DNA of 64,000 nucleotides from Mustelus asterias. Lineage: Eukaryota. Made by a program: the position numbers and the translations under genes. The notes under the pieces are model-generated. The model searched no databases. It saw only the letters and a program-made list of their open reading frames with translations, and was not told where the DNA came from. The stretch is taken from contig NW_027590186.1 in the NCBI RefSeq assembly GCF_964213995.1, positions 620,001-684,000 on the forward strand. Direction: 5' to 3'. Shown here one piece after another: positions 19,721 to 60,144 of the stretch (position 1 is the stretch's first letter; the number at the start of each line of letters is the position of its first letter).

Positions 19721-20504
19721 TGTTCCCAGATTCTGATCTCTCCTCTCCCTCCCTCTCTCTCCACAGCCGCTGATCTCTGTTAGTGTCGGAGCTGTGGCTC
19801 CCGCTGACTCAATGGGATAACAGATTGAAGAGAATCCCTTATTAATGTAGAGAGAAAATTCTCCAGGCACACTAATCGGATCCATGGAGACTCACATCAA
19901 TTCCAGTCACGAAACAAACAGGTTCACTTAACCCTGTTCAATCCAACACTTTTCATAGCACAATGGAATAGAACATGTACCCAGCCTGGACAATGGTGGA
20001 TGTTCACTGAAAGCAGGACAAGTGGAAATAGTGGAGACATTAGCCATAAACTTTCAATCTTCCTATTTCTTTCAAAATTCATTTCATGGGATGCGGGTGT
20101 TGCTGGCTAATCCCAGCATTTATTGTCCATCCCCAGCAATCCTTAAGAAGGTGGTGGTGAGCTCCCTTTTTGAACCACTGCAGCGTGTCCAGTGGGTACA
20201 AACATAGAGCTGTTAGGGAGGGCATTCCAGGATTTGGACCCAGTGACAGTGAAGGAACAGCTGCCATATTTCGAAGTCAGGATGGTGCGTGCATTTTCCA
20301 ACTGCAGTATTGTGGCTCCTTCCAGGGAGAATTTCCTATGTGTTCGAGCCTGACCCTATGGAGTGTTGAGGTGGTACGAGGAGCCACTCGAGTGTGAGGG
20401 CGCATATTCCGAGCCAGGGGAGGATTGGCAATTGGGCCCAGGAAGGTGCAGTGTGCAGTTGCAGAGTTATGCTGCCTGACCATGTGATAAATATAGTTAT
20501 TTGT

Positions 20505-21160
20505 TTATTGGCAATAAAGCATTTAGAAAGCAGTGGAAGGATCAGACAGAGTCAGCATGGATTTATGAAGGGGAAATCATGCTTGCCAAATCTGTTCAAA
20601 TTATTTGCAGATGTAGCGAGTAAAGTTGGCAAGGGGGAGCCAGTCGATGTAGTATATTCGAACTTTCTGAAAGTGTTTAAGAAGTCCCGCAGAAGAGATT
20701 ATCGTGCACGTGGGTTTGGGGAAAGTGTATTAAAATGGATATTACGAAACAAAGAGTATGAATTACTGGGTTCTTTTTTAAATTGGCAGCTCGTAACTGG
20801 TAGGGTGCCAAAGGAATCGTTGCTGGGACCCCAGCTCTTCGCAATATTTCTTAATGATTTGAATGACGGAACAAAATGTAATATGTCAATGTTTACAGAT
20901 GATACCAAGTTGGGTGGGAGGGTGAGCTTTGACGAGGATGCAGAGATCCTTCAGAATGATCTGGACAGGTTGTGTAGTGGGCAAATCAATGGAAGATGCA
21001 GTATAATTTGGATAAATGTCAGATTATTCGCTTTGGAAGCAAAACAAGAAGGCAGAATACTATTTAAATGGCTGCAAATTGGGAGAGGGGAGTGTGCACC
21101 GAGGCCTGGGTCTCCTTGTGCACGAGTCACTGAAGGTAAGCATGCAGGTGCAGCAAACAG
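20505..21160 (+). mobile_element. Degraded CR1 RT fragment
   Basis: SQHGFMKGKSCL...LLGPQLF...FTDDTKLGG. Confidence 0.8.
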
Positions 21161-21164
21161 CAGT

Positions 21165-22190
21165 GTGTGAAAGTGTGTCTCTGTTCGTGAAAGTGTGTGT
21201 GTGTGTCTGTGTGTGTGAGAGAGGAGGGGCGGGGTGAGTGTGGTTGAGTAAGAAAATGGTTGCAATTTCGACAGAGTGGATCAGTGAGTGTGTGTGAGGT
21301 AACTGCTGAGAGAATGTGTGTCTGTGAAAGGCGGAGTGTTTAAGAGCGATACATTGTGCAGACATGTGTGTGCATGTGTGAGAGACTGTGTGCGAGATTG
21401 TGTGGGTGCCAGAGAGAGAGTTGTTGTGAGCGACATTGTTTGAGAGCAAGAGTGTGCATGTGTGAGATAATGTGCAATGGAGCGAGCGTGTGAAAGAGAG
21501 AGAGAGGGAAACATGTGCCTGTGTGAGACAATGCATGTTCAAGTGTGTCTATCAGAGAGATAGTGCATGTGAATGAGTGTGAGACAGAGTGAGCGTGCAT
21601 GGAAGAGGCAATGTGAGAGAGATAGTGCATGTGTGTGTGTGTGTGAGAGAGAGAGAGAATGTGTGCGCGAGAGTATGTGATTGTACTTATGTGAGAGACG
21701 ATGTCTGTGTGTAAGAGTGTGTGTTGGAGTGTGTGCACAAGTCTGTGTTTGTGAGACAATGTTTGTGAGAGAACCAGTGTGTGAGAGCAAGAATGTGAAT
21801 GTGTGAGATAGTGTGTGAAACAGAATGAAATATGTGCGTGCGTGTGAGAGAGAGAGATGCGTGTGCAAGAGGGATTGTGAGAGAACCTGTGTGAATAAAT
21901 GTGAGACAGCTTGAGTATGTGTGAGACGCCGAATGCATGTGAGTATGTGTGTAAGAGAATGTGAGACTGTACTTATGTGAGAGTGTGTGTCTGTGTGTAA
22001 GAGAGAATGTCCGTGGGGGTGTGTGTGCGTGTGAGTGTTTTTGGATATGGGGGTTTGAGAGATTGATTGGGAGAGCGAAAGTATGTATGTAATTGTGTTT
22101 AATAGAGTGTATGTGTAACGTGAGAGATAGATAATGTGTGTGGGTGCGTTAAAGAGAGCGTTTGAGAGATAAAGTAAGTGTGAGTACGTA
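21165..22190. repeat. ~1 kb degenerate (GT)n/(GA)n low-complexity tract; resumes at ~26480-26570 after the LINE
   Basis: Directly visible dinucleotide-rich sequence; it produces the His/Thr/Ser-rich spurious ORFs. Confidence 0.9.
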
Positions 22191-22578
22191 TCTCATTGTT
22201 CCACTGGAGCAAGCTGAGAGGGAGTGATTGGAGACAGCAGTGCTGGTGAGAGAAAAATTTAATTGTTTATTTATTTAATTAGTCAGGTAGTGTGTGTGTT
22301 TTTTTGGCCTTTACTTCTGCAGTAGAATTTTAAGTTTAAAGTGAAAACTGGAAGTGGGCTGCTAAGGAGTCTGGGAAGGGTTTTTTAAGCGCGTGAAGTA
22401 TAAAAGGTAGGCTGCAGTATACGGCGGGCAGCGGCGGGAGCGGGCAGGGAGTGCGTGGGAAGCAGAATGTGAGCTATAAGACTTTGGCTCACAGAGCTTG
22501 GGCAGAAAGGGCGAGCAGGGGTGAGTTTAAATTCATTTCTGCACTTTCTACCTGGTACTGGCAAGGTATCTAGAGGGG

Positions 22579-23499
22579 ATGGGTGTGCAGGCAGTGCTAT
22601 GTTCCTCTTGCACTATGTTTGAGGTGAGAGACGACGACAGTGTCCCTGCTGATTACACCTGTGGGAAGTGCACCCATCTGCAGCTCCTCCAAAACCGTGT
22701 TAGGGAACTGGAGCTGGAGTTGGATGAACCTAGGATCATTAGGGACGCAGAGGTGGCCATAGACAGAAGGAATACAGTTACTCCGAGGAATGAAAACAGA
22801 TGGGTGACGGTGAGAGGGGCTGGGAGGAAGCAGTCCGTGCAGGGATCCCCGGTGGTCGTTCCCCTTAGCAACAAGTATTCCGCTTTGGATACGGTTCAGG
22901 GGGATGACATACCAGTGGTGAGCCGCAGTGAGAGGATCTCCAGCACTGTGTCCGTCTCTGTGGCTCGGGAGGGTAAGGGGCAGAGCGGGAGGGCAATCGT
23001 TATTGGGGGCTCGTTAGTTAGAGGGATAGATAGGAGGTTCTGTGGCAGCAAAAGAGACTCACGGATGGTATGTTGCCTACCGGATGCCAAGGTCCGTGAC
23101 GTCTCAGACCGTGTTTTCCGGATTCTGAAGGGGGAGGGGAAACAGTCACAAGTCGTGGTACACATTGGTACCAACAACATAGGTAAGCGAAGGGACGGGG
23201 ATTTAAAGCAGGAATTTCTGGAGCTGGGCTGGAAGCTGAGAGCCAAGACAAAACATGTGGTCATCTCTGGTACGTTGCCGGTGCCACGTGATAGCGAGTT
23301 GAGGAACAGGGAGAGAGTGCAGTTAAACATGTGGTTGCAGGGATGGTGTAGGAGGGAGGGTTTCAGATACGTGGATAATTGGAACACATTCTGGGGAAGG
23401 TGGGACCTGTACAAACAGGACGGGGTGCACCTGAACCAGAGGGGCACCAATATCCTGGGAGGGAAATTTGTTACGGCTCTTCGGGGGGGTTTAAACTAA
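22579..23499 (+). CDS. CR1 ORF1p (CxxC/CxxC zinc knuckle, coiled coil, SGNH/GDSL esterase domain)
   Basis: 306-aa open frame with CSSC..CGKC, IGGS (GDS motif altered), HIGTNN and DGVH. Confidence 0.88.
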   Translation: MGVQAVLCSSCTMFEVRDDDSVPADYTCGKCTHLQLLQNRVRELELELDEPRIIRDAEVAIDRRNTVTPRNENRWVTVRGAGRKQSVQGSPVVVPLSNKYSALDTVQGDDIPVVSRSERISSTVSVSVAREGKGQSGRAIVIGGSLVRGIDRRFCGSKRDSRMVCCLPDAKVRDVSDRVFRILKGEGKQSQVVVHIGTNNIGKRRDGDLKQEFLELGWKLRAKTKHVVISGTLPVPRDSELRNRERVQLNMWLQGWCRREGFRYVDNWNTFWGRWDLYKQDGVHLNQRGTNILGGKFVTALRGGLN

Positions 23500-26393
23500 T
23501 TTGTCAGGGGAGTGGGAAAAGGAGTTGTAGTCCAGAAGTCAGTGAGGGTGGTGAGGTATTGGGGAAGGTATCAGGGTCAAGGGTGGGTACCGGTAGACAG
23601 GAAGGTGGGTTGAAGTGTGTCTACTTCAATGCAAGGAGCATCCGGAACAAGGTAGATGAACTTGAGGCATGGATTGGTACTTGGGACTACGATGTTGTGG
23701 CCATTACGGAGACGTGGGTAGAACAAGTACAGGAATGGTTGTTGGACGTTCCGGGGTATAGATGTTTCAGTAAGTGTAGGGAAGCTGGTAAAAGAGGTGG
23801 AGGAGTGGCATTGTTAATCAAGGATAGTTTAACGGCTGCGGAAAGGCACTTCGAGGGGGATCTGCACACTGAGGTAATATGGGCTGAGGTTAGAAATAGG
23901 AAAGGAACGGTCACGTTGTTAGGAGTTTACTATAGGCCCCCAAGTAGTGATAGAAATGTGGAGGAGGGGATTGCTAAGCAGATTATGGATATGTGTGGAG
24001 GTCGCAGGGTAGTGGTCATGGGGAACTTTAACTTTCCAAATATTGATTGGAACCTTTGTAGGTCAAATAGTTCGGATGGGGCAGTTTTTGTGCAGTGTGT
24101 GCAGGAGGGTTTCCTGACACAATATGTGGATAGGCCGACAAGAGGTGAGGCCACATTGGATTTGGTACTGGGAAATGAACCGGGCCAAGTGTTAGATTTG
24201 GTCGTGGGAGAGCACTTTGGAGATAGTGATCACAATTCGGTGTCTTTTGTTATTGCAATGGAGAGGGATAGGGCCGTACGGCAGGGCAAGGTTTACAATT
24301 GGGGGAGAGGTAATTATGATGCGATTAGGCAAGAATTAGGGGGCATAAGTTGGGAACAGAAACTGTCAGAGAAAGGAACTAATGAAAAGTGGAACTTTTT
24401 CAAGGAACAAATACTGGATGTCCTTGATAGGTATGTCCCTGTCAGGCAGGGAGGAAATGGCCGAGTGAGGGAACCATGGTTCACGAAAGAGGTGGAATGT
24501 CTTGTGAAAAGGAAGAGGGAAGCTTATGTAGGGACGAGGAAACAAGGTTCAGATGACTCGATTGAGGGTTACAAGTTAGCAAGGAATGAGCTGAAAAAGG
24601 GGCTTAGGAGAGCTAGGAGGGGACACGAGAAGTCCTTGGCGGGTCGGATCAAGGAAAACCCCAAGGCTTTTTACTCTTATGTGAGGAATAAAAGAATGAC
24701 CAGGGTGAGGTTAGGGCCGGTCAAGGACAGTAGTGGGAACTTGCGTATGGAGTCAGTAGAGATAGGCGAGGTGATGAATGAATACTTTTCTTCAGTGTTC
24801 ACCAAGGAGAGGGGCCCTGTTTTTGAGGAAGAGAAGGTGTTACAGGCTATTAGGCTGGAGGAAATAGATGTTTGGAGGGAGGATGTACTGGCAGTTTTGA
24901 ATAAACTGAAGGTCGATAAGTCCCCTGGGCCTGATGAAATGTATCCTAGGATTCTTTGGGAGGCAAGGGATGAGATTGCAGAGCCTTTGGCTTTGATCTT
25001 TGGGTCCTTACTCTCCACGGGGATGGTGCCAGAAGACTGGAGAATGGCGAATGTTGTTCCTCTGTTTAAGAAAGGGAATAGAAATGACCCTGGTAATTAT
25101 AGACCGGTTAGTCTTACTTCGGTGGTTGGTAAATTGATGGACAAGGTCCTTAGAGATGGGATTTCCGACCATTTAGAAAGATGCGGATTAATCCGGGATA
25201 GTCAGCACGGATTCGTGAAGGGCAAGTCGTGCCTCACAAATTTGATAGAATTTTTTGAGGATGTAACTCAGTGTGTGGATGAAGGTAGGGCAGTTGGTGT
25301 CATATACATGGATTTTAGTAAGGTGTTTGAGAAGGTCCCCCATGGTCGGCTTATGATGAAAGTGAGGAGGTGTGGGATAGAGGGAAAGTTGGCCGATTGG
25401 ATAGGTAACTGGCTGTCTGATCGAAGACAGAGGGTGGTGGTCGATGGAAAATTTTCGGATTGGAGGCAGGTTGCTCGCGGAGTGCCGCAGGGATCAGTGC
25501 TTGGTCCTCTGCTCTTTGTGATTTTTATTAATGACTTAGAGTAGGGGGCTGAAGGGTGGATCAGTAAATTTGCTGATGACACCAAGATTGGTGCAGTAGT
25601 GGATGAGGTGGAGGGCTGTTGTAGGCTGCAAAGAGACATAGATAGGATGCAAAGCTGGGCTGAAAAATGGCAAATGGAGTTTAACCCTGATAAATGTGAG
25701 GTGTTTCATTTTGGTAGGACTAATTTAAATGTGGATTACAGGGTCAAAGGTAGGGTTCTGAAGACTGTGGAGGAACAGACAGATCTTGGGGTTCATATCC
25801 ACAGATCCCTAAAGGTTGCCACTCAAGTGGATAGAGCTGTGAAGAAGGCCTATAGTGTGTTAGCTTTTATGAACAGGGGGTTGGAGTTTAAGAGCCGTGG
25901 GGTTATGCTGCAACTGTACAGGACCTTGGTGAGACCACATTTGGAATATTGTGTGCAGTTCTGGTCACCTCACTATAAGAAGGATGTGGAAGCGCTGGAA
26001 AGAGTGCAGAGGAGATTTACCAGGATGCTGCCTGGTTTGGAGGGTACGTCTTATGAGGAAAGGTTGAGGGAGCTCGGGCTGTTCTCTCTGGAGCGGAGGA
26101 GGCTGAGGGGAGACTTAATAGAGGTTTATAAAATGATGAAGGGGATAGATAGAGTGAACGTTTAAAGACTATTTCCTCGGGTGGATGGAGCTATTACAAG
26201 GGGGCATAACTATAGGGTTCGTGGTGGGAGATACAGGAAGGATATCAGAGGTAGGTTCTTTACGCAGAGAGTGGTTGGGGTGTGGAATGGACTGCCTGCA
26301 GTGATCGTGGAGTCAGACACTTTAGGAACATTTAAGCGGTTATTGGATAGGCACATGGCGCACACCAGGATGATAGGGAGTGGGATAGCTTGA
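23500..26393 (+). pseudogene. CR1 ORF2 (APE endonuclease and reverse transcriptase) with in-frame stops
   Basis: YFNARSI, ITETW, SDHN, PGPD, NYRPVSL, GVPQGSVLGP and FADDTK motifs in one frame; stops at 25542-25544 and 26163-26165. Start approximate. Confidence 0.9.
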
Positions 26394-27400: not shown

Positions 27401-30400
27401 TCTCTAACGGTCACAATGTGCTTTAGGGATCTCATCTGTGAGACGCCGAGTCAAACACCAAGTCAACCTGTCACATTCCAAAAAGATACAAGTTTATTGA
27501 AGAAATAAATCAAATTTCACTCCCTGAAATACAGGAGAAGGAACCAGAAAGTTTATAACGAGTTAGGCAGATTCCTGGTCCCAACATGGCACCACGCCCA
27601 CAGAAACAGAACAAGCACAAACGATGCAACAATCGAGTTCCCAGCAGATAGATCTGTTCAATCTATCAATTTTATTCAAACTGTTGGATTCTGATAGTAA
27701 GTTAATCAACTTACAACAACAGAAAATCAATAACCTCCTTGAAATTAATCTGATATTCATTTCAAAACTCCTTTCGACTTTTAACTATTTCTCTCTTTCT
27801 GTCTAATTCTCAAAAACTATGTAAAAATGTAATTTCACTGAAAATGAGCACATCACGAATAACAGATTCAGGATAGTTCAATGTCCCTAACAGAGATGCA
27901 GTGACACAGTCACAATTAAAAGAACCAAGAAACATTTACATTCAAAATCATTACCTGTTTCAATCGAATTTCTTAATTAATCATAATCAACAAAATATTC
28001 GAGGCAAAACAGCTTAACGAGCTGGGCACAGCAGGGTAAAAAATGTTTTGCTTCTGAATTAATTTTGATACAATTAAATATTCTCTAAAACAGATGATAT
28101 TTTGCACGCCAGTGCACTATTCAAGGCCTTTTGTTCTGAATTATTTAGCACCAATATTATATTTTAACTTATTGTTAATTGCCAGTTAGTTCTCCTGTTA
28201 GCTGATTTGTACTCTGTAATAAAATCAATTTTCAATCATTCAAAACTTGATTCTGCCTCTATCATTGTTAAATAATTACGTTCCAATTAAATCTCAAACA
28301 CTGTTAAACAATAACATCAAATTATTGACTGGAAAGGTTCAGACACATGTAATTCATTTGCTTAAATCTAATCACATTGTAAAATTTTACTTTTTCACTT
28401 TTACTCCAAATGCCTTATTATCACCTACAAATGCGTCAAAAATGCATGCTTCTGAATTCGTATTTCCTATAACGGCCTGACATTTTGAAATCTATAAAAC
28501 TGCTTCCGAGAATTAATAATTTAGACCATCCATATAATTTAACTGCTTAATTATTTGTTTAATTAAAGAAGATCTGAATTAAATAGTGCAAAACACAATG
28601 AGGACAATTGATTCAAATCCTCTGCAACACTGAAACATGATGCACAATACAAGTCCAGACATTTTCTTCAGTATAATATTGATAAGAATTAAACATCAGG
28701 TTAATATAGGATCAATTATTCTATTCTGTCATTTGTGCAACACATTGTTCTATCCTGTGCTCAGCAGTAATGGGAGACAGGATGCTATTATTAAGTGCAG
28801 AGCAAACGTTATTTTTATAATACTTATAATATAAATATAATATTTTTATACAAATTAATCTTTTTGAATTTCAAGTATTAACTTCTCAATCTCTAGCCAG
28901 TTTCTGGTCACACCTTACGACAATTCAAACACGATTATGTGAACAATTACTTGAGTGGTAGTGAATTCCATCTGTCAGATAACTCTGTTCAATCTGTCAA
29001 ATTTATTCAACCTCTTTGATTTTAATTGCTCAATGGTCAAATTACAACGACAAAAAACAATAACTCATTTTAAATTGAACATATTAATTTCAAAACTCCC
29101 TTCGACTTTTAACTATCTCTCCCTGTCTGTCGCAAATCTGGAAAACTGGGCAAAAATGTAATTTTTCTGAAAATGAGCGCATCAAATATAACAGATTCAG
29201 GGCAGTGTAATGCCCCTAACAGCGATACAGTGTCACAGTAAGAATTGTAATTCATATTTTATTTTAACATGTAAGCATCAGTTAACATGAAGAAAATGCT
29301 CTAACATATATTTATTTTATTTTTCTGAAACCTGTTTGTTTTATCCCGACAAGAATTTTCAAAGGCAGTTTCTTTATTCATTTAGCCAGAAAACATGTAA
29401 CCGCTCAGTATCACTGAGATTTAAAAAATACAGAAACAATTGAAAAACGCCAAACCATTTCACAAATTTTAAGATTAGATTAGTGATTAATTATCTCGAT
29501 ATCCAAATACAAATTGCTTGGAAGGAATAATCTGGTTGCGCCTGCACAGGAAGAATGTGAAAACTGCATACATAAATTGCCAAATAGCAATGTCTTATTC
29601 CCCAAAACTCGTATTCCAGTGAATGCGGACTTAATCAGGGAGGTAACGATTAATGCAAAATATCTTGTTAAACTGAACGCTGCTTTGGAAACAGCACGTC
29701 ACTATTGAAACTGTTTCTGGAATTTCACAAAATATTCACGAAACTTTTCTGGTCATGTTAATTGAGTGCGTAGCACAGCAGAACTATTAACGGTGATTAA
29801 TGCTCAATTATATTAATGTAAAATAATCTTTGGTGTCACTATGGAGTTATATTACCGATTAATAATTGCTTGATTTACATTAATTTTACTCTCAAACTAT
29901 CAAACTTGTTAATGAGAAGCTTATGATTGCAGCAATGACTTAGTGTCCGAATGAGCGTTGTAAGCCGTGATTTATTTTAATTTGTAAGTGTTATTTAAAA
30001 TGTATAACAATGCTGTAATATCTTTATTTTATTTTTCCCAAACCTGCCTGTATTCTCCCTGCAAGGATTATCAAACTCATAGTTTGTATTCAGCCAGGAA
30101 ACGTGTAACCGCTCAATGCCACCGAGTTCAAACAATGCAGAAACATTGCCGAAACGCCAAACCATTTCACACATTTAAACATTCATCTTGACCTCGCCAC
30201 AGAATCTCCTCAACAGAAATACACCAATGCACATCACTGAGCGAGTGACTCCATTTCACGGAGAAGCAGCTCAATTCCACATTCAACAGAATTAAATGTA
30301 ACATTGCAAGAAAATCTCAATAACGCATCCAGCAAACCAGCTCCTGACCAAATGTATGAATTATTAAACTGAACAGAAATCTGGAATAATAGCAATAGCA

Positions 30401-31462
30401 TTGCGAGGAGGTGGAGCATGTCCAACCAATTAATGTTGAAACTTTATCAAATTTTTTTCATATTGGGTCATATTTCAAACAGAAGTAAACATATTTAAAC
30501 ATTTGGATGGTAAAAGCTGCAGCCATCATATGCCACCGAGGTTAAACATTGCATGTATCCCAAATCGTGATTGCAGTGGCAAGATTTGTTCTGAACGGAG
30601 TAAACCGTGGTTTAGTTTAACCTGCAATTATCATTTAAGATTGAAACAAAAATACAAATTGAATAAAGCCTGCCTGATTTCTGTCTGCAATCATGCGTCA
30701 AGCAGTTTAACGCCCGGAGACTGTATTAAATCACAACGCGTGCAACAGCTCAGTGTCGCCGAGTTTAAACAATGCAGAATCGCCGAACTATTTCACAAAT
30801 TTTACTTACTGGAACTCACCCAGACACACAATCTCCTCACCAGAGATTCACATCACTGAGGGACTAACCCTGTTTCATGCAGAAGTAGTTCAATTCCACA
30901 AACACTTCCAACAGAATCAAATGTAGCATTGCAAGAAAATCTCAATTTAAAATCCAGCCAATCCGACGACCACCAAACTAATCAATAATTAAAATGAACA
31001 GAAATATGTCATAACAACACCAGCATTTTGACTAAGCGGAACATGATCACTAAATTAATACAGAAAGTTTAACCCATTTTGTTAGTATTGGGTTAAATTT
31101 CAAATGCGTGTGCATTGGATGGTACAACCCGCAGCCACTAGATGTCCCCGAGTTTAAGCATTGCAGAAACGCCGGACTGGTAACCAGAAGTTGGGCATTC
31201 AAAGTAACCCAGCCACATAATGTCTTGGCAGATAAACACCAAAATACAACTACCAGGGACTGAATCACTCAGCATCACCTTTTGTCAATTAACAGTAGAA
31301 TTTCATAACCCCATTTTAAGCAGAATCACATGAAACATTGTGAAGATTTTCAGCACAGAATCCAGCAAACCTCATTGCATTGAACAAATTAGTAAAATCC
31401 ATTAAAAAATATAAAACAAAAACTCAAGTAAAACAGTTACTAAATAATTACATGGTTCTTAC

Positions 31463-31520
31463 CTGCAGTCACCGTCACCATGGTACCTTGTCCCCAGTAA
31501 TCCCAGTACCACTGATGTAT
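31463..31520 (-). other. Immunoglobulin heavy-chain germline-joined D(D)-JH segment
   Basis: Reads IHQWYWDYWGQGTMVTVTA then G|gtaag. It has the JH WGxG motif and a phase-1 donor, and begins immediately at a 12-RSS heptamer. Confidence 0.88.
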
Positions 31521-31548
31521 CACAGTAACACATACCCGCACAAAAACT
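31521..31548 (+). promoter_or_regulatory. 12-bp-spacer recombination signal sequence flanking the DJ segment
   Basis: CACAGTA + 12 nt (acacatacccgc) + ACAAAAACT. Confidence 0.92.
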
Positions 31549-31873
31549 GCACTCACTCTCCAGAACACATTTACTTCCGAACCAGTTTAGAATATATGCA
31601 GTACTTTTTCAAAATACAATGAACACAACCTTATCCAAAGTGTCAGATACATTAAAACGAGCGTTATATTCAGGTCTGTCGTTGCTGAAACTTTTAAAAG
31701 TATATACAGAGAAAATACCACATCCAATTACATGGGTATGCTTGTTAGGTTTTGTGTTGCAGTTTCGTTCTCTTAGGTTTGTGGGCCGGTTATGAACTCT
31801 GCTATTAATATCACATTTAAAACAAGTACTGACCTTCAGGTTACACTGGAAGCTGTTGCATTCCCTCCGGAGC

Positions 31874-31912
31874 TGTTCTTGTTCGGGTGCAGCCCTGGTT
31901 CCTCTCGCTGTG
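31874..31912 (-). promoter_or_regulatory. 23-bp-spacer RSS of the VH
   Basis: CACAGCG + 23 nt + ACAAGAACA directly after YYCSRH. Confidence 0.88.
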
Positions 31913-32383
31913 GTGTCTTGAACAGTAATAGATGGCGGTGTCTTCAGCCTTCAGGTTAGTAATTTCCAAAGCGAAGATGCTGTTAGAAGTGTCTTTCGAC
32001 GGAGTACATCGATTTTGAATTCCAGGCGCGGAGTAATTGCTGGATGAACCGTCGTACTGAAGCAGCCACTCCAGACCCTGTCCGGGAACCTGTCGGATCC
32101 ACCGCATGTAAGCGCTACCAAGGCTGAAGCCGCTGGTTTTACAGGTCAGTTTCAGGGAGCCTCCCGGACGTCCGGTCTCTGCCTCTGACTGAGTCAACAC
32201 GACCTGCGTCTAGACACCTGTAAAAATAGATTAAAAACGCCGAGGATTAATTCTGGTGAAGTGATTGCTGACTCTGGAATATTCCAGAGATAGACGAACA
32301 CTAACAGTTAGAGACTTGGACAATAAAAACTACTCACCGGATAAGAAAGTCAGCAACAAACTGAGAGAAATCGCCGACCTCAT
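31913..32383 (-). pseudogene. IGHV: IgM-type VH gene segment (leader exon 32338-32383, V exon 31913-32217) with one nonsense codon
   Basis: Leader MRSAISLSLLLTFLS G|gtgagt; acceptor ttttacag|; then [50 protein letters not shown]...[13 protein letters not shown] at 32210-32212 is the only stop. Confidence 0.93.
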
Positions 32384-32473
32384 CCTTCTGGTAAATTGGG
32401 GGAAATGGTTGTGTCAGGAACTCAGTGAACAAACCAGCTCCTCGACTGTTGGATTCCGGTCCCACTGAGCGGC

Positions 32474-32483
32474 ATTTAAATAC
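32474..32483 (-). promoter_or_regulatory. TATA-like box of the VH promoter
   Basis: gtatttaaat ~90 bp upstream of the leader ATG in a GC-rich patch. No ATGCAAAT octamer was seen nearby, as expected for shark VH promoters. Confidence 0.55.
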
Positions 32484-35400
32484 CCGGCAGCAGGGTGCGG
32501 CTTTCGAGGCGCCGCCTGTTGATTCCCTGCTGGAGGCGGCGACTGGATTCGTCCCACCTTCCACACCCCAACAGAATGGACTCCGAGATTTACAGTAGGT
32601 TAATATTAAAATTGGCATTTTATTTGTGTCGGGATATTTGTTTGGCTGAATATGTTCATTATATTGTCTCCATTATTTCTGATGGTGATATTGCAGTTCA
32701 TCATCCTTTATTTAAAAGAAAAAACGAATTCCATTGTAAGTATGGTGCTTTTATTACCACGCCCCTAACAAGAACATACATCTGAAAATGATGAAATAAC
32801 ATTTTCGGAAAATAAAGAGACAATCAGTCTATTTTGCAACAATCCCTGGTCTCTGTCACATTATAATAATAAAGCATAATTTATCAGAATAATTGTTATC
32901 GATTTCTGTTACTAAACGTGGGGGATGAACAAAGTGATTCTATTTACAGTGTGGATGGCTATCACTGGATAATTTGGAATTGGAGATGAGAAGAAACTCT
33001 CACACAATACAGTTTTTCTCCTTCTATTTGTCAAACTGCACAATCTCGAAGACAGCCCTTTGAAAATAATAAGAATCCCGCCCTCCGGATAATCGAATAG
33101 TGAGTTGACAGAGAGACATAAACTTAAATCGAATTTTGACAGAGAAGTTAATTAATGGAACGGACACGGAGATCATTAAAGTTCTCCTTCAGCATCCAAA
33201 TCATTGCAGCTCACTCTATTGGCCACCAGCTGTCGAACATTCACTGGTGTTGGGAACACAGGATATCAGGACTTTGCGGCACATTACACAAAATTACAAG
33301 AATAAATGTTTTATCTTCCATTGAATCAGGTTATGACCTGATCATTTCTCCACTCATTGGCAGCTATGAGAGGAACCCTTCAATAATGGAAATCAGATTA
33401 TACTGTACAATAGAATAGGGTATTAATCACGTACAAGAGACGCTGCTGTTTAAATGCGATACAGAATTTTCAGAATATTCCAGGAATCCCCGCTGTTCAT
33501 GTCAGTTTTATGATGTGCTTTTAATATTATTTCGATGCATTTTTGGCCATTGCTCTGATCTCAATTGACTGGGGAATTGGGACCATCAACGTCTCTCTGT
33601 CGCATTTTATGAAGTGGTTAATAAACAGACTTTAATTATTGGAATGGCATTTACTTGGAAGTTATACAAATGAAAAAGCATCTGGTCACTTTATTGTTTT
33701 GCGATACTATTTACTCACATAATGAACAGGACACTGAATGAAAATATTTGATTTGAATGATTACGATTTAAAATGTGTCTTTCTTTTGCGAATGAAACAT
33801 TTATTGTTTAAATGTCTGAATCCCATCTTGTCCATTCAGGTTCACGCGAATCTGTCCCACACAGTATTTCGCAGCAATCCAGCCTTCTGCCAAATGCTCA
33901 AAGTTATTGACAGGAAGCATCTGGCTTTGTTTGTGCAGTAAATCAAAGATCTCTTTCCTCAGTAGTGACTGCTTGGCTGCAAGCCAACTTAAAACCCTTC
34001 ACATTGTCAATGGGGCCCATTTGTAAACACATCTACCGAGCAACAGTACTGGAGGCACTTTAATTTTTTTCAGTTGTAAATCTGGATGAGTTTTTCCCAT
34101 CTCTCATGAAAGGAAAGTTATGCAGGTTCTCCGGCACCCTGTTCGAAACAATGATGATTTTTCCAACACATCATGATATTGTGATGGATGGGTAGAAAGA
34201 ATTACAGGCAGACTCTGAGAGATGAGTCAGAGTGAGGACACATGTTGTAATACATTAACATGTATGTTTGTGTTTTCTTTCCCTTTACCTTTCCATGGGA
34301 TGCTTGAGTTGGTGGAAAGACCAGCACTTTTTGCCTGTCCCAAATTCCCTTGAACTGCCTGGTTTTCTAGGCCACCTCTGAAGATATTAAAGAGTCAGCC
34401 ATTTTGTTGTCCATCGGGAGTCACATCCTTGTGAGTCCAGGTAGCCATGGCAGATTTATTTCATTGGGGAATTAGAGAGGTTCCTATGGTCACCAATAGT
34501 ATCTATTCCAGATTTATTAATTGAATTCAAATTCCACCAGGGGCAATGGTCCGATTTAAATCCGTGCCCTCACATCATTGTCCTGGGCCTCTGGATCACT
34601 GGCCTAAATAAAGTAATATTACGTCACCATCTATGCAAACAATAAATGCATGACTGTGTTGATGCAGGAATGAATGATAGTTGAATGAATGATAGTTGGA
34701 TGAAGGACAGTTTGATGGCTGAATATTTTGATTGAGGAATCAGTGAATGGATTGATAGATGCATTGGTAGATGGTACTGAAAGATTCTGTTCTACATTCC
34801 CATATTTGTGCTTGGCTGCTTCAGAAATTGAAGAAGCTCCTTTATTCCATTTGTGTCAGGCTAATACCTCCAATTCTTCCAGAGTGTCTGGGTGAAATAC
34901 GTTCCGATTTGCTCGGGAGTTAGCAAGTTGATCCTCACGAAGAGAAGGACATTTTCCTGCGGCTCGGATGGTTCATTTCTCTGCTGATGCTGAATCTTCA
35001 TACCCAAGATAGAAAGAGGGAACGTGATTAGGTTGAGGAGCAAGGATTGTAGTATTTCAAACATGTGGTTCTATCTGTGCAACAAATCACTCAACATGCC
35101 CTCACCCAAATTTGTGAAGGTAACAGGCTGAAAAGTAAATAATCTGGCAACAGAGATATTGTGAAACTCACTGGACAACTACAAGTGTGACCTCATTTCC
35201 CAAAACAGAGTCATAAAGAATCGGGATTTAAAGCTTCAGTAACTGCACATGAGGTACAGATAGTTTCATTTATCTCATCTCTTTGAAAATCATCACACAC
35301 TCCAGTTACGTAGCAGCAGTTTCTGTGTGATGATGAGGTGATTAATTGTTAATAAAGCACAGAGGCTGCGAGAGAGCTGCTCATTATCGTCGGTCTGAAT

Positions 35401-36361: not shown

Positions 36362-38041
36362 ACATAGAACATAGAACATAGAACATTACAGCGCAGAACA
36401 GGCCCTTCGGCCCACGATGTTGCACCGACCAGTTAAAAAAAAACTGTGACCCTCCAACCTAAACCAATTTCTTTTCGTCCATGAACCTATCTACGGATCT
36501 CTTAAACGCCCCCAAACTAGGCGCATTTACTACTGATGCTGGCAGGGCATTCCAATCCCTCACCACCCTCTGGGTAAAGAACCTACCCCTGACATCGGTT
36601 CTATAACTACCCCCCCTCAATTTAAAGCCATGCCCCCTCGTGCTGGATTTCTCCATCAGAGGAAAAAGGCTATCACTATCCACCCTATCTAAACTTCTAA
36701 TCATCTTATATGTTTCAATAAGATCCCCTCTTAGCCGCCGCCTTTCCAGCGAAAACAATCCCAAATCCCTCAGCCTCTCCTCATAGGATCTCCCCTCCAT
36801 ACCAGGCAACATCCTGGTAAACCTCCTCTGCACCCTCTCCAAAGCCTCCACATCCTTCCTGTAATGTGGGGACCAGAACTGCACACAGTACTCCAAGTGC
36901 GGCCGCACCAGAGTTGTGTACAGTTGCAACATAACGCTACGACTCCTAAATTCAATCCCCCTACCAATAAACGCCAAGACACCATATGCCTTCTTAACAA
37001 CCTTATCTACTTGATTCCCAACTTTCAGGGATCTATGCACACATACACCTAGATCCCTCTGCTCCTCCACACTATTCAAAGTCCTCCCGTTAGCCCTATA
37101 CTCAACACATCTGTTATTCCTACCAAAGTGAATTACCTCACACTTCTCCGCATTAAACTCCATCCGCCACCTCTCGGCCCAACTTTGCAACCTGTCTAAG
37201 TCTTCCTGTAAACTACGACACCCTTCCTCACTGTCTACCACACCACCGACTTTGGTGTCATCAGCAAATTTGCTAATCCACCCAACTATACCCTCATCCA
37301 GATCATTAATAAATATTACAAACAGCAGTGGCCCCAAAACAGATCCCTGAGGTACACCACTTGTAACCGCACTCCATGATGAATATTTACTATCAACCAC
37401 CACCCTCTGTTTCCTATCCGCTAGCCAATTCCTGATCCAATTTCCTAGATCACCCCCAATCCCATACATCTGCATTTTCTGCAGAAGCCTACCATGGTGA
37501 ACCTTATCAAACGCCTTACTAAAATCCATATATACCACGTCCACTGCCTTGCCCCCATCCACCTCCTTGGTCACTTTCTCAAAAAACTCAATAAGGTTAG
37601 TAAGGCACGACCTACCTGCCACAAAACCATGCTGACTATCACCTATCAATTCATTACTCTCCAAATAACTATAAATCCTATCCCTTATAATTTTTTCCAA
37701 CATCTTGCCGACAACAGAAGTGAGACTCACCGGTCTATAATTCCCGGGGAAGTCTCTGTTCCCCTTCTTAAACAATGGGACAACATTCGCTAACCTCCAA
37801 TCTTCTGGTACTATACCAGAGCCAACGACGACCTGAAGATCAGAGCCAGAGGCTCTGCAATCACTTCTCTTGCCTCCCAGAGAATCCTTGGATAAATCCC
37901 ATCCGGACCAGGGGATTTATCTATTTTCAGACCCTCCAGAATATCCTGCACATCCTCCTTATCAACTGTAATACTGTCTATTCTACTCCCTTGCAACCCA
38001 GTGTCCTCCTCAGCTATATTCATGTCCCCTTGCGTGAACAC
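36362..38041 (-). mobile_element. Young 5'-truncated CR1 LINE
   Basis: 438-aa open RT ORF at 36459-37775; (ttctatg)n tail. Confidence 0.92.
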
Positions 38042-39186
38042 CGGAAAGTAATTTTTAATATGCTAATCATTATGAATGATTGAGAACTGCTGAATGAATT
38101 ATTAAATTGTGAATGAACAACAAAGAACAAAGAACAATACAGCACAGGAACAGGCCCTTCGGCCCTCCAAGCCCGCGCCGCTCCCTGGTCCAAACTAGAC
38201 CATTCTTTTGTATCCCTCCATTCCCACTCCGTTCATATGGCTGTCTAGATAAGTCTCAAACGTTTCCAGTGTGTCGGCCTCCACCACCTTGCCTGGCAGC
38301 GCATTCCAGGCCCCCACCACCCTCTGTGTAAAATATGTCCTTCTGATATCTGTGTTAAACCTCCCCCCCTTCACCTTGAACCTATGACCCCTCGTGAACG
38401 TCACCACCGACCTGGGGAAAAGCTTCCCACCGTTCACCCTATCTATGCCGTTCATAATTTTATACACCTCTATTAAGTCTCCCCTCATCCTCCGTCTTTC
38501 CAGGGAGAACAACCCCAGTTTACCCAATCTCTCCTCATAACTAAGCCCCTCCATACCAGGCAACATCCTGGTAAACCTCCTCTGTACTCCCTCCAAAGCC
38601 TCAACGTCCTTCTGGTAGTGTGCCGACCAGAACTGGACGCAGTATTCCAAATGCGGCCGAACCAACGTTCTATACATCTGCAACATCAGACCCCAACTTT
38701 TATACTCTATGCTCCGTCCTATAAAGGCAAGCATGCCATATGCCTTCTTCACCACCTTCTCCACCTGTGACGCCACCTTCAAGGATCTGTGGACTTGCAC
38801 ACCCAGGTCCCTCTGCGTATCTACACCCTTTATGGTTCTGCTCCTCCCTACATTATTTATAGCTCCTCCCTACATTATTTCTACCAAAATGCATCACTTC
38901 GCATTCATCAGGATTGAACTCCATCTGCCATTTCTTTGCCCAAATTTCCAGCCTATCTATATCCTTCTGTAGCTTCTGACAAGGCTCCTCACTATCTGCA
39001 AGTCCTGCCAATTTTGTGTCGTCCGCAAACTTACTGATCACCCCAGTTACACCTTCTTCCAGATCATTTAAATAAATCACAAACAACAGAGGTCCCAATA
39101 CAGAGCCCTGCGGAACACCACGAGTCACAGGCCTCCAGCCGGAAAAAAGACCCTTCCACTACCACCCTCTGTCTTCTGTGACCAAG

Positions 39187-39422
39187 TAAGAAGTTTAACA
39201 ACACCAGGTTAAAGTCCAACAGGTTTATTTGGTAGCAAAAGCCACACAAGCTTTCGGAGCTGCAAGCCCCTTCTTCAGGTGGACTCACCTGAAGAAGGGG
39301 CTTGCAGCTCCGAAAGCTTGTGTGGCTTTTGCTACCAAATAAACCTGTTGGACTTTAACCTGGTGTTGTTAAACTTCTTACTGTGTTCACCCCAGTCCAA
39401 CGCCGGCATCTCCACATCATGA
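39187..39422. mobile_element. Palindromic Penelope-like terminal element with a 14-bp target duplication
   Basis: ~95-bp perfect inverted arms centred near 39283; flanked by cttctgtgaccaag at 39173-39186 and 39423-39436. Confidence 0.8.
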
Positions 39423-40152
39423 CTTCTGTGACCAAGCCAGTTCTCCACCCATCTAGCCACCTCCCCCTTTATCCCATGAGATCCAACCTTTTTCACCAGC
39501 CTACCATGAGGGACTTTGTCAAACGCTTTACTAAAGTCCATATAGACGACATCCACGGCCCTTCCCTCGTCAACCATTCTGGCCACTTCTTCAAAAATCT
39601 CCACCAGGTTAGTGAGGCATGACCTCCCTCTCACAAAACCATGCTGACTATCGTTAATGAGTTTATTCCTTTCTAAATGCGCATACATCCTATCTCTAAG
39701 AATCTTCTCCGACAACTTTCCCACCATGGACGTCAAGCTCACCGACCTATAATTACCCGGGTTATCCTTCCTTCCCTTCTTAAATAACGGGACCACATTA
39801 GCTATCCTCCAATCCTCTGGGACCCCACCTGCATCCAGTGACGAGACAAAGATTTGCGTCAGAGGCCCAGCGATTTCATCTCTCGTCTCCCTGAACAGGC
39901 TTGGATAGGTTCCATCAGGCCCTGGGGATTTGTCAGTCTTTATATTCTCGAACAAACCTAACACTTCCTCCTTTGTAATGGAGATTTTCTCCAACGGTTC
40001 AAAACTCCCCTCCGAGACACTCCCAGTCAACACATCCCTCTCCTTTGTGAATAGCGACGCAAAGTATTCATTTAGGATCTCCCCTACTTCTTTGGGCTCC
40101 AAGCATAATTCCCCACTTTTGTCCCTGAGAGGTCCGATCTTTTCCCTGACAA

Positions 40153-41347
40153 CCATAAGACCATAAGACCATAAGACATAGGAGCGGAAGTAAGGCCATT
40201 CGGCCCATCGAGTCCACTCCACCATTCAATCATGGTTGATTTCAACTCCATTTACCCGCTCTCTCCCCATAGCCCTTAATTCCTCGAGAAATCAAGAATT
40301 TATCAATTTCTGTCTTGAAGACGCTCAACGTCTCGGCCTCCACAGCCCTCTGTGGCAATGAATTCCACAGACCCACCACTCTCTGGCTGAAGAAATTTCT
40401 CCTCATCTCTGTTCTAAAGTGACTCCCTTTTATTCTAAGGCTGTGCCCCCGCGTCCTAGTCTCCCCTGTTAATGGAAACAACTTCCCTACGTCCATCCTA
40501 TCTAAGCCGTTCATTATCTTGTAAGTTTCTATCAGATCTCCCCTCAACCTCCTAAACTCCAATGAATATAATCCCACGATCCTCAGACGTTCATCGTATG
40601 TCAGGCCTACCATTCCTGGGATCATCCGTGTGAATCTCCGCTGGACCCGCTCCAGTGCCAGTATGTCCTTCCTGAGGTGTGGGGCACAAAATTGCTCACA
40701 GTACTCCAAATGGGGCCTAACCAGTGCTTTATAAAGCCTCAGAAGTACATCCCTGCTTTTGTATTCCAAGCCTCTTGAGATAAATGACAACATTACATTT
40801 GCTTTCTTAATTACGGACTCAACCTGCAAGTTTACCTTTAGAGAATCCTGGACTAGGACTCCCAAGTCCCTTTGCACTTTAGCATTATGAATTTTGTCAC
40901 CGTTTAGAAAATAGTCCATGCCTCTATTCTTTTTTCCAAAGTGTACGACCTCGCACTTGCCCACGTTGAATTTCATCAGCCACTTCTTGGACCACTCTCC
41001 TAAACTGTCTAAATCTTTCTGCAGCCTCCCCACCTCCTCAATACTACCTGCCCCTCCACCTATCTTTGTATCATCGGCAAACTTGGCCAGAATGCTCCCA
41101 GTCCCGTCATCTAGATCGTTAATATATAAAGAGAAGAGCTGTGGCCCCAACACTGAACCCTGCGGGACACCACTTGTCACCGGTTGCCATTCTGAGAAAG
41201 AACCTTTTATCCCAACTCTCTGCCTTCTGTCTGACAGCCAATCGTCAATCCATGTTAGTACCTTGCCTCGAATACCATGGGCCCTTATTTTACTCAGCAG
41301 TCTCCCGTGAGGCACCTTGTCAAAGGCCTTTTGGAAGTCAAGATACA
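40153..41347 (-). mobile_element. Young 5'-truncated CR1 LINE nested in an older CR1
   Basis: 368-aa open ORF at 40242-41348; (tcttatgg)n tail. Confidence 0.9.
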
Positions 41348-42199
41348 TTGTTCCTAATGTATGAATAAAATGCCTTGGGATTCTCCTTAATCCTTAATCC
41401 TGTCTGCCAAGAACATTTCGTGACCCCTTTTTGCTCTGCTAATTCCCCGTTTGAGTTCTTTCCTACTTTCTTTGTACTCCTCCAGAGCTCCCTCCGTTTT
41501 TAGCTGCCTGGACCTAACATACGCATCTCTTTTCTTTTTGACCAGTCCCTCAATTTCCCTGGTTATCCACGGTTCTCGAATCCTACCCTTCCTATCCTTT
41601 TTTACAGGCACATGCCTGTCCTGTATCGTCATTGGATCGTCATTGTTGAAAATAATTACTTTCTTTCTGAACATTTATGACATTCTCCTTATCTGCTGGA
41701 AGATTTTAAGTTGTAAGTTTGTTTATTCGTGTTATAAGTAGGCTTACTTTCACACATCAATGAAGTTGCTGTGAAAATCCCCCAGGCGCCACACTCCAGC
41801 GCCTGTTCGGGTACATTGAGGGAAAATTTAGCCTGGCCAGTGCATCGAGTCTAGGTAAACTTATCAGTAATTATTACTAACACACTGGACTCTGTCTCAG
41901 TTTATATCTGTCTCAGTCCTGTATCAGTAATTATTACTGACGCACTTGTCTCTATCTCAGTTTATCTAATGTTAGGTCCAGTATCATTAATTACTGGGTT
42001 CTCTCTCAGTTCACATCGTACAAACTCCTATATCCAGTAAAATTGCACGAGACACTGTCTCGGTTTTCTTTTCCTCGACAATGTCATATATATTTTTAAT
42101 GTTTCTTTCATGGGATGTGGGTGTTACTGGAAAGAGCAGCATTTGGCCTTTGACCATCCCCGCATGGCACTCGGAAGTAACTTATTTCCGTTTTGTTGG

Positions 42200-46377: not shown

Positions 46378-46899
46378 GGAATCTTCGGTTTTCAGTTATT
46401 TCCAAAGAGAAGATGTCGTTTGAAGGATAAAATCAAATTACTGCATATTCTGGAATTGAAACCAAAAGAGAAAATGCTGGAAAATCTCATCAGACCTGGC
46501 AATATTTGTGAGGAGAGAAAAAATCTGACGTTTCGAGTCCAGATGACCTTTTGACAAAGCTTTGACAAAGGGTCATCTGGACTCGAAAAGTCAGCTCTTC
46601 TCTCTCCTTACAGGTGCTGCCAGACTTGCTGAGATTTTCCAGCATTTTCTCTTTCCGTTGTTTGAAGTGTCTTTGGGCTGAGTAAATTGATTCTGAATCC
46701 TGGGGCGGAGGAATTGTAGGTTGACCAAGACTATCGTACTGAGTAAGACACTATAAACACTGTTCAGGAACCTGTCGCACCAAGACCAGCCAGTTGCTGC
46801 CACTACTGAACGCTTTGGCTTTACAGGTCAGTCTCAAAGATCCTCAGGGACGCCCGGCTTCTGCCTCTGGCTGAGTCAACACAACCTCCGATTCGACAC
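46378..46899 (-). pseudogene. IGHV: Second IgM-type VH pseudogene, paralogue of 31913-32217
   Basis: [53 protein letters not shown]...APGIQNQFTQPKDTSNN, an insertion, then IFSLEI..KTED. Stops and frameshifts present; YYC, RSS and leader exon absent. Intron and upstream homology to 32225-32980 is seen at ~47250-47660. Confidence 0.88.
46426..46656. mobile_element. Palindromic Penelope-like terminal element inserted in VH framework 3
   Basis: Inverted arms centred on acaaagctttg (~46560); target duplication gt(c/t)gtttgaag at 46415-46425 and 46657-46667. Confidence 0.75.
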
Positions 46900-46934
46900 T
46901 CGTAAACATGTCTAAAATCCTATGAAAACAAAAC

Positions 46935-47245
46935 GCCACGCACCCCGGACATACTCTCTCACCTTTTTCCCATCGGGAACAAAACCCAAAAATCTGAGGA
47001 CACGTACAAACCGTCTGGAAAACAACTTCTTTCCTGCTGCAATCAGACTTTTGAATGGACCTACCTCGCATCAAGTTGATCTTTCTCTACACCCTAGCTA
47101 TGACTGGAACACTACATTATTCACTCTTTCCCTTCCTTCCCTATGTACGTTATGTTCTGACTGTACAATGCGCAAGAAACAATAATCTTCACTGTGTACT
47201 AATATGTGCGATAATAATAAATCAAATGAAATGAAATCAAATCAA
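46935..47245 (+). mobile_element. Rex1/Babar 3' fragment inserted in the VH pseudogene leader intron
   Basis: RTRTNRLENNFFPAAIRLLN; (aaatc)n tail. Confidence 0.8.
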
Positions 47246-48844
47246 ACATAATATATCAAAACCACCAAGGATTATTCCCGGTGAATTGATTGCTGACACT
47301 GGAACATTCCAGAGACAGACGAACACTGAGGCAGTAACAGTGAGATCCATTGTCACGTCTTTGCTAGTCCAAGAGGTGAAATGCATTTGAACATCTGTTA
47401 TAGAAAATAAACAATTTCACTGTAAATTAAGTGCCTTTATTTCTGCACCCCTTCACAAGGGAATGGACATACACAAGATGAGATTACCTTATCAGGGTCA
47501 ACACGTCAGTCTGATTTGCAGTAATTCTGTGTCTCTAACATATTGCAGCAAAAATATAATTCATTACAGGAACTATTATCGATTTATGTAACTTAATGCT
47601 GGAATGATTGTATTTCAGGTGTGGATAGCTATCACTGTAATTTGGGAGTGGATCGAAGAAGGGAAGAAGTGGCTCAAAACAACCTCAAGTCCCTCAGCCT
47701 TTCCTCATAAGACCTTCCCACCAAACCTCTGCACCCTTTCCAATGCATCCACATCCTTCCTATAATGCGGTGACCAGAACTGTACGCAATACTCCAAGTG
47801 CGGCCGCACCAGAGTTTTGTACAGCTGCAACATGACCTCCTGGCTCCGAAACTCAATCCCTCTATTCTCGCGAGACAATTAATCCACAAACTCAACTAAT
47901 GTTCTCAGGACCCGGTTTCGAATCCTGCCATGGCAGATGGTGGAATTTAAATTCAGTAAAAAACATCTGGAATTAAGTAGCTACTTATGACCATGATATC
48001 ATTGTCGATTGTGTACAAACCTATCTGGTTCATTAATGTCCTTTAGAGAAGCAAATATGCCGTCCTTACCTCATCGAGCCGACATGTGATTGCAGAGCCA
48101 CAGCAATATGATTGGCTCTCAACCGCAGTTGGCACCTGATCAGGTGGAGGGGCTGAAACCACAAGGGCATCTCAGGGTCGTGACCTGGGGATATGAAGCC
48201 AAGTTGGGTCTGAGTGGTTTCTGAGGAAGTTGAAGGGCTGCTTTGTGCTGAGGAGTTCAGTGAGGGGTAAAAGAGACGTGAAAAACCCTGGGTTGGGAAG
48301 TTTTGTGTTGGTGCCACATCCCCGGATCGGTGTGCGGTGGCCTCCGCAGGAGAGGCGGGCTGGCCCGACTTGCCTCCTACTCGAGCCCCCGGCTCCCCGC
48401 GTGGCCTCTGCTGCTGCCATTCAGGTTGTGCTCGAGGGTCCACTTGTGCCAGCGCGCGTGGTTGGCATGCCCCTCCCCTGCAGCCATGGCAACGCCGCAG
48501 ACCGTTAACCGTCCCCTCTTTCAAATCTGATTCCGATCCGGGTAAGAACCCGCGCGAGTCCATCAACAAACCACACCCGCTGCAATGCGCATGTGCGACC
48601 CCAACCTCCTCAGCATTCTGCGTACACCGCCCATTGGCCCGCCCCCACATCGCCGCCATCTTTGTTAAGGGCACATTGTTTCTTCATCTTCTGTCCAAAC
48701 GGAGCACGTCTGCCCCACACAAAGATACACATCACTTAATATCAGAGATATTTAAAATATTGTTTTTATCGCCTCAACCGTAACGCCGCATAAAACGTCA
48801 ATAAAACCGACAGGACCTTGTCTCCTCATTCAGCAACCAAAATC

Positions 48845-50160: not shown

Positions 50161-50379
50161 TCATAAGAATCCATTGTTAATAGGTTTCTCCACAGATGCC
50201 GCCAGGTCTGCTGAGTTTATCCAGTATTTTCAGTTTAAATTTCCCAATTCCAACATCCGCAATATTTTACTTTTCATTCCGGGTGGAACAGTGGTTAGCG
50301 CTGCTGCCTTACACTGCTCGGGACCTGGGTTTGATTCTTGCCTTGGATGACTGCCTGTGCGGAGTCCACCCACTGTGGT

Positions 50380-51395: not shown

Positions 51396-51397
51396 CC

Positions 51398-60105: not shown

Positions 60106-60144
60106 CACACTGAATGAGGATCCCGCGGGCTTCGTACAAAAACT
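60106..60144 (+). promoter_or_regulatory. 23-RSS of TCR V1
   Basis: CACACTG + 23 nt + ACAAAAACT. Confidence 0.9.

Follow-up and report, generated by a model that had tools for sequence, protein, structure and literature searches.

The principal natural evidence for RAG having cut and joined DNA in germ cells, and having reshaped the loci that encode antigen receptors, comes from shark antibody genes that are joined in the germ line. As far as the accessible portions of the published accounts go, germ-line joining by RAG, with trimming of the joined ends, is established for shark immunoglobulin (Ig) genes (PMC2193156, PMC2193153), and the joined arrangements of V (variable), D (diversity), and J (joining) segments that have been listed are VD-J, VD-DJ, and VDJ (PMC5192425); VD-J, VDJ, and VJ in a further review (PMC4279169); and, for horned shark and little skate, VDD-J, VDJ, and VD1-D2J (PMC2193153). 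The appearance of VD1-D2J in the last of these lists means that germ-line joining of D2 to J is already known, in clusters where the V is joined as well. No germ-line V-DDJ or V-DJ was found in the literature searched, a body of text that leaves the key subscription papers and supplements outside it. Here we describe a candidate for such an arrangement in a stretch of 64,000 nucleotides from Mustelus asterias (contig NW_027590186.1, positions 620,001 to 684,000; hereafter the window). In our judgment the minus strand of the window is likely to carry an orphaned and decaying IgM-type heavy-chain minicluster, in which D1, probably D2, and the heavy-chain J (JH) were joined in the germ line by RAG-type recombination, whereas the V was left free.

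The element in question is a coding block of 58 nt (31520-31463) that reads IHQWYWDYWGQGTMVTVTA plus 1 nt, and all parts of the unit to which it belongs lie on the minus strand. The unit begins with a leader exon of 46 nt (32383-32338), made up of 15 codons and 1 nt (MRSAISLSLLLTFLS) that start from an ATG at 32383-32381 and end at a GTGAGT donor. The leader peptide MRSAISLSLLLTFLS is identical in two relatives, P0006 and P0009. A 120-nt leader intron bounded by GT and AG (32337-32218, the acceptor ending at 32218) is followed by the heavy-chain V (VH) exon, which spans 305 nt (32217-31913), encodes an IgM-type V-set domain, and closes with AIYYCSRH. Abutting this is a recombination signal sequence (RSS) with a 23-nt spacer between CACAGCG and ACAAGAACA (31912-31874; a 23-RSS with three mismatches to the consensus). 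A gap of 325 bp (31873-31549) then leads to an RSS with a 12-nt spacer between AGTTTTTGT and TACTGTG (31548-31521), which we take as the original 5' RSS of D1, and directly to the block. Letters 1-12 of the latter (31520-31509) derive from D1; letters 13-21 (31508-31500) are nine junction letters, TACTGGGAT, of unproven origin; and letters 22-58 (31499-31463), 37 nt encoding YWGQGTMVTVTA plus 1 nt, derive from JH. A splice donor stands immediately behind (GT at 31462-31461, reading GTAAG from 31462). The motif WG.G[TA] occurs three times in the six frames, and only the occurrence at 31482-31496 continues into TMVTVTA and a donor. An earlier, sequence-only reading of this DNA had picked out the VH, its 23-RSS, the 325-bp gap, the single 12-RSS, the 58 nt, and the GT donor, with every position and number correct. 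Its remark that the commonly described germ-line-joined forms include the V is only partly right: a D2-J join has been published as well (VD-DJ and VD1-D2J), and V-DDJ has been described as a somatic intermediate in nurse shark.

The composition of the block could be addressed because its parts recur elsewhere in public sequence data. A total of 21 public runs were found, and the Logan contigs of four of these were placed on positions 30400-33000 at 90% likeness. Three of the four (X1, X3, and X4, with 166, 106, and 97 contigs placed) are three samples of one organism from one study, and the last (X5, three contigs) comes from a second organism. In X3, a contig on 31509-31560 takes in 12 nt upstream of the 12-RSS, the RSS itself, and coding letters 1-12. 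Beyond 31509 on the gene strand it continues with two further coding letters, GT, then CACAGTG, and then at least 21 nt with no recognisable nonamer. This contig holds a free D1 of a paralogue, with a 3' heptamer of its own, and in its flank 11 letters are identical to RSS-D1, a nurse shark primer that targets sequence 3' of D1 (PMC2435157). The orientation agrees too, since both are antisense to the gene. The other end of the block has a similar counterpart. A contig of X4 matches the window up to 31499, and 5' of this point it carries 11 other coding letters preceded by the heptamer CACTGTG; it holds a free JH of a paralogue.

The 12-RSS and first 12 letters are thus those of the free D1, and the last 37 nt match a free JH that has its own heptamer, for which reason the block is best described as a fusion of the 5' part of D1 and a trimmed JH. 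The D1 portion is 2 nt (GT) shorter than the free copy, and the JH portion is shorter by 11 nt, or by 8 where GAT is taken for the GAC of the free J with one change. The segments fused here, D1 and JH, accordingly occur in paralogues as separate segments with their own RSSs, and the block shares with germ-line-joined Ig clusters the loss of the inner RSSs, the retention of the outer RSS, and the trimming of the joint ends. The proposal that the 12-RSS is the original 5' RSS of D1, already put forward in the sequence-only reading, gains from the finding that the same RSS precedes the free D1 in X3.

It could be argued that there is no fusion at all and that the block is a native long J that normally carries a 12-RSS, as the J segments of T cell receptors (TCRs) do. 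Neighbouring V segments have TCR-like look-alikes, as described below, and the 24 nt before the Trp codon fall within the length range of tetrapod JH segments. We reject this explanation, which we find scarcely credible: the RSS and the first 12 letters recur before a separate 3' heptamer in the free D1, and the free J has a heptamer of its own 11 nt from the start of its match to the window.

A contig of 232 nt in X4 (31476-31707), with no differences from the window and a depth of 3.6, starts in the J part, crosses the two junctions and the RSS, and ends within the gap, and other listed pieces of this run with no or one difference have depths of 5.7 and 8.4. The fused form therefore appears in a second sample at single-copy depth. 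This bears on whether the reference might have captured a somatic rearrangement from a lymphocyte, or contain an assembly error, with a germ line that is really V-DD-J or V-D-D-J. In nurse shark B cells and thymocytes, V-DDJ is indeed described as a somatic intermediate, prominent for one gene group (PMC2435157). One contig of X1, discussed in the next paragraph, departs from the window inside the fused block. Somatic junctions vary from cell to cell, however, so that a single one should reach neither an assembly consensus nor single-copy depth with no differences in a second sample, and no clonal selection would be expected of a V pseudogene without constant (C) exons. We regard somatic capture or misassembly as improbable.

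There are nevertheless several observations that weigh against a germ-line fusion of D1, D2, and JH in a decaying locus, and one of these is the X1 contig just mentioned. It is 846 nt long, has a depth of 42, and shows no differences from the window on 31502-31914, after which follow 433 nt unlike the window. The departure comes after D1 and TACTGGG, within the fused block. As the contigs are built from 31-letter words, a departure at 31502 means that another place in that genome shares at least 31502-31531, and the D1 junction thus exists in a second context, as an allele or a paralogue. The contig that spans both junctions in X4 has 33 letters left of the D1 junction and only 24 left of the J junction, compared with the 31 needed for bridging. 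Only 12 spacer letters are visible for the RSS of the free JH, so that a 12- and a 23-nt spacer are not distinguishable there. No free D2 was seen among the contigs of the four runs on 30400-33000. Furthermore, the four runs with the locus, of unknown tissue and individuals, all belong to a single study and may stem from the animal that was assembled. With regard to decay, constant exons may lie beyond the start of the window, and none of the 21 runs found is recorded as RNA, a negative that does not in itself demonstrate silence.

The 846-nt contig may be read in two ways. It may reflect a switch of the assembly graph to a paralogous cluster whose DD segment is fused, or it may represent an unjoined DD-J allele of the locus itself. 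The existence of the D1 junction in a second context suggests that D1 and D2 were joined first and DD to J later. If the contig were allelic, the locus would be polymorphic for the last joining step, with DD separate from J in X1 and fused DDJ in the window and in X4. The 433 nt approximate the length of a D-J spacer. No polymorphism between joined and unjoined forms was found among the nurse sharks sampled for light-chain genes (PMC2193153). On balance, we think it doubtful that the locus is polymorphic in this way.

The nine letters TACTGGGAT between the D1 and JH parts might be a remnant of D2, added letters, or in part J (GAT versus GAC), and none of these origins is proven. We consider D2 the probable source for two reasons. 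To judge by its 3' RSS, which resembles a 23-type signal, the free D1 needs a partner with a 12-RSS under the 12/23 rule. In addition, the germ-line joins described for nurse shark light-chain genes show trimming and P letters but no long insertions (PMC2193153), which again points to D2 as the origin of the letters.

The alternative is that D1 was fused to J directly, with no participation of D2, and that the nine letters were added or arose by a local duplication of the TACTGGG of the J. This sequence does stand twice in tandem within the block, and a free D2 is missing from the run contigs. If JH also carries a 23-RSS, as is usual in sharks, its direct join to a D1 with a 23-type 3' signal would break the 12/23 rule, and the absence of long insertions from the nurse shark light-chain joins speaks against added letters. 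The X1 contig, moreover, has D1 and TACTGGG and then diverges, as would a DD block elsewhere. A fusion without D2 is unlikely. The claim of the sequence-only reading that D1, probably D2, and a trimmed JH were fused in the germ line is supported for D1 and JH, for which paralogues provide free copies, and plausible but not established for D2, of which no free copy was seen.

The 23-RSS of the V and the 12-RSS of the DJ both retain the heptamer CAC, and they face each other in a 12/23-compatible, deletional orientation. Because the segments also share one orientation, a single deletional V-to-DJ join would be legal under the 12/23 rule. The whole 64-kb window was scanned on both strands for the 12-RSS consensus with up to three mismatches, and the counts were compared with those of 100 shuffles. 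The site at 31548-31521, with two mismatches, was the only match. This is no excess, as 0.87 matches were expected and 54 of the 100 shuffles gave at least one; the weight of the site lies in its abutting a J in the right orientation and not in the window count. For the 23-RSS, four matches were found versus 0.81 expected, a number reached in none of the 100 shuffles. One of these stands directly behind the VH exon, and two more follow other V segments (60.1 and 62.9 kb). A looser scan covered 28000-34000, requiring CAC and agreement at 11 or more of the 16 consensus positions, with spacers of 11-13 and 22-24 nt. It gave no further RSS wholly inside the V-to-DJ gap and none inside or behind the fused block, and so the inner RSSs have been lost and the outer 12-RSS of D1 kept. 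The extra rows that it returned at 31510 share the nonamer of the 12-RSS at 31548-31521, and downstream of the J it yielded only matches at 11-12 of the 16 positions.

The VH exon matches the Pfam V-set family with an E-value of 8.9e-15, its matches in the PDB are antibody heavy-chain V domains, and its closest VH relatives are of the IgM type, from Heterodontus francisci (68% identity), Chiloscyllium punctatum (67-70%), and Scyliorhinus torazame (70%). Each of the 17 candidates passed an E-value of 1e-10, and 10 relatives were aligned. In the runs, the bins for the J, the V exon, and the region upstream of the V stand at ~15-35 times single-copy depth in X1, X3, and X4, and that for the JH part at ~30 times in X1. 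Tens of related VH and JH copies therefore exist in the organism, and the unit stems from an ordinary IgM-type cluster. Upstream of the V leader, a stretch of 450 nt (32314-32750, minus strand) has ~25-35 times single-copy depth in X1 and is therefore common to many VH clusters. Two contigs of X5, each 151 nt long with one difference, cover part of the V-to-DJ gap (31653-31803) and of the V exon (31949-32099).

The sequence-only reading had gone further and treated the V as a usable segment in a one-step cassette, overlooking an in-frame TAG at 32212-32210. The stop lies in the leader part of the V exon (G-V-stop-T), in the codon before the last leader residue, where all 10 aligned relatives have Gln (VQ), and two relatives have the identical leader end GVQS. 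It therefore interrupts the open leader and V frame that a functional IgM heavy-chain minilocus needs. Two contigs of X1 (31891-32155 and 32130-32293, with no differences and depths of 48.6 and 61.2) confirm both the V exon and the TAG, other listed pieces of this run with no or one difference having depths of 42-61, which serve as its single-copy reference. A bypass of the stop through an alternative acceptor was considered and rejected, as the two AG sites just downstream of the acceptor would both shift the V frame. The frame is otherwise open, and Cys23, Trp37, and Cys96 are kept. Ser replaces Pro8, and framework region 3 (FR3) reads RCTPS, compared with RFTAS in 7 of the 10 relatives and L, V, or I in place of F in the other three. 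As it stands in the assembly, the V is therefore a pseudogene, albeit not one of great age.

No constant region was found to go with this V. The stretch downstream of the J (31460-1, minus strand) holds no Ig constant exon but contains long interspersed nuclear element (LINE) open reading frames (ORFs) for reverse transcriptase and endonuclease together with AT-rich sequence. All 87 minus-strand stop-to-stop ORFs of at least 65 aa in 1-31462 were searched against Pfam with E-values up to 0.1, and none of them, over 31.4 kb, matched an Ig family; two matched reverse transcriptase, and one (1-294) weakly matched 7tm_1. Exon remnants below 65 aa may exist within this stretch. In nurse shark the distance from J to Cμ1 is 6.3-6.8 kb, with segments ~400 bp apart (PMC2435157), and Heterodontus clusters are given a span of 18-20 kb (PMC2191167). 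The constant exons that a V-(D)-J-C minicluster would have of its own are thus missing within the window. As for a promoter, a perfect octamer ATGCAAAT occurs nowhere in the window (4.2 expected by chance), and TATTTAAAT lies ~100 nt upstream of the leader ATG.

Several side observations concern the sequence behind the J. At 31444 and 31447, the sole contigs of X1 (depth 45.8) and X3 (9.63), both near single-copy depth, read T and T where the window has A and A; X4 has the letters of the window there, at a depth of 44, ~10 times single copy. A tandem repeat or switch-like region was sought downstream of the J, and there is no tandem array, only one diverged duplication of ~430-450 nt (30102-30553 and 30739-31165; 68% alike over 461 aligned columns, with starts ~620 nt apart). 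Several bins around it have 3-10 times single-copy depth in X1, and the sequence may be common to the J-C introns of other clusters.

These features allow an assessment of whether the locus works as a one-step heavy-chain cassette, in which the V would join a premade DJ as in a light chain, be spliced to C, and yield a largely fixed, aromatic complementarity-determining region 3. The compatible and deletional RSSs with their intact heptamers, the otherwise open V with its conserved Cys and Trp residues, and the good J donor would all suit such a gene, and early-life expression is possible for shark Ig genes joined in the germ line (PMC4279169). Set against this are the TAG, confirmed at single-copy depth and with neighbouring AG sites that shift the frame; the absence of any Ig family match from the downstream ORFs; the lack of a perfect octamer in the window; the replacement of conserved FR3 residues by Cys and Pro; and the absence of any RNA record among the runs holding the stretch. 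A working cassette is very improbable. With a stop codon in the V and no constant exon within 31.4 kb, a heavy chain cannot be made from the unit as assembled, and, taken as a present-day gene, the functional reading is contradicted on three counts: the V has a stop codon, constant exons are missing, and no evidence of expression was found. Of the earlier proposal of one-step V-to-DJ joining, what survives is that the join would be deletional and 12/23-legal; the notion of a working heavy-chain gene does not.

The surroundings contain other V segments. Three V-set segments lie near the far end of the window: one on the plus strand at 59690-60322, with a good 23-RSS at 60106-60144; one on the plus strand at 61100-61492, with a V-set match; and one on the minus strand at 62867-63247, with a good 23-RSS at 62913-62951 and a direction opposite to that of the other two. 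In the atlas they resemble V genes of TCR alpha, alpha/delta, beta, and gamma, a likeness that serves as a lead only. A PDB sequence search with these segments was swamped by multi-domain antibody chains and is not discriminating, and the names in protein databases are uninformative. A second VH-like pseudogene, badly decayed, lies on the same strand as the VH-DJ unit at 46380-47330. The likeness is 72% for its V exon fragment (46659-46909) and 85% for a piece of leader intron (47250-47327). Frame breaks are present, FR3 holds an insertion of ~260 nt, and the 3' end is followed by CACTGTG, which is not a normal V heptamer.

LINEs with endonuclease and reverse-transcriptase ORFs occupy 20370-26162 on the plus strand and 36462-41393 and 49258-53504 on the minus strand, and the blocks of strong GC skew coincide with them. 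Positions 21000-22200 are CA/TG-rich and of low complexity, with minus-strand ORFs of up to 217 aa that are rich in His, Thr, and Ser and not coding-like. The frame at 1-294, which is open off the window start, lies on the same strand as the VH-DJ unit, 31 kb downstream of the J; its match to 7tm_1, the family of rhodopsin-type receptors, has an E-value of 0.015 and falls below the Pfam cut-off.

The history of the locus that we favour would run from V-D1-D2-J through V-DD-J (or V-D-DJ) to V-DDJ, each step being legal under the 12/23 rule. The C exons would have been lost, or might never have been present, when the cluster came to adjoin other V segments with TCR-like look-alikes. RAG in lymphocytes may still be able to join the 23-RSS of the V to the 12-RSS of the DJ, deleting ~0.4 kb.

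With a broken V and no C, the locus is informative about history, that is, stepwise joining and the stranding of a heavy-chain Ig (IgH) minicluster beside other V segments, and not about present immunity. Its contribution is an arrangement with D joined to J and a V left free, the very intermediate that tetrapod B cells make first, and it can be compared directly with D1 and JH segments that are free elsewhere in the same organism. Were joined and unjoined forms to segregate, RAG would have acted in the germ line recently or would be acting there still, and the time and rate of this activity could be measured. The locus is chiefly of value for marking stepwise joining in the germ line; should the X1 contig be allelic, it would also mark recent RAG activity in germ cells.

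Comparison with described systems places the locus among several neighbours. VH genes inside or near the shark TCR alpha/delta locus have been published, among them those termed TAILV, Ig-like V genes inside the TCR delta locus (PMC12227049). The present V is likewise of the VH type and lies among V segments whose look-alikes, taken as a lead, are TCR V genes. TAILV uses TCR D, J, and C segments, whereas the VH described here has its own JH-type DJ block and splice donor, is a pseudogene, and is directed away from the V segments on the plus strand at 59.8-61.5 kb. The germ-line-joined IgH clusters of cartilaginous fish, such as those of horned shark and skate, offer another comparison. In both, segments that sister clusters keep apart have been fused in genomic DNA, the inner RSSs are gone, and the ends are trimmed in the fashion of RAG joining. 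The locus differs from these in lacking C exons, in the broken state of its V, and in leaving the V alone free, a form (V-DDJ) that does not appear in the lists cited above. The somatic V-DDJ intermediate of nurse shark has the same arrangement, with D1, D2, and J joined, the V and the gap intact, and the 5' RSS of D1 kept (PMC2435157), but its junctions vary from cell to cell, whereas here one junction is found in the assembly and in the single-copy contig of X4. Finally, the DJ intermediate of tetrapod IgH, as the same account describes it, likewise presents a DJ with a 5' 12-RSS that awaits a VH with a 23-RSS (PMC2435157). What in tetrapods is a transient somatic step is seen here in genomic DNA.

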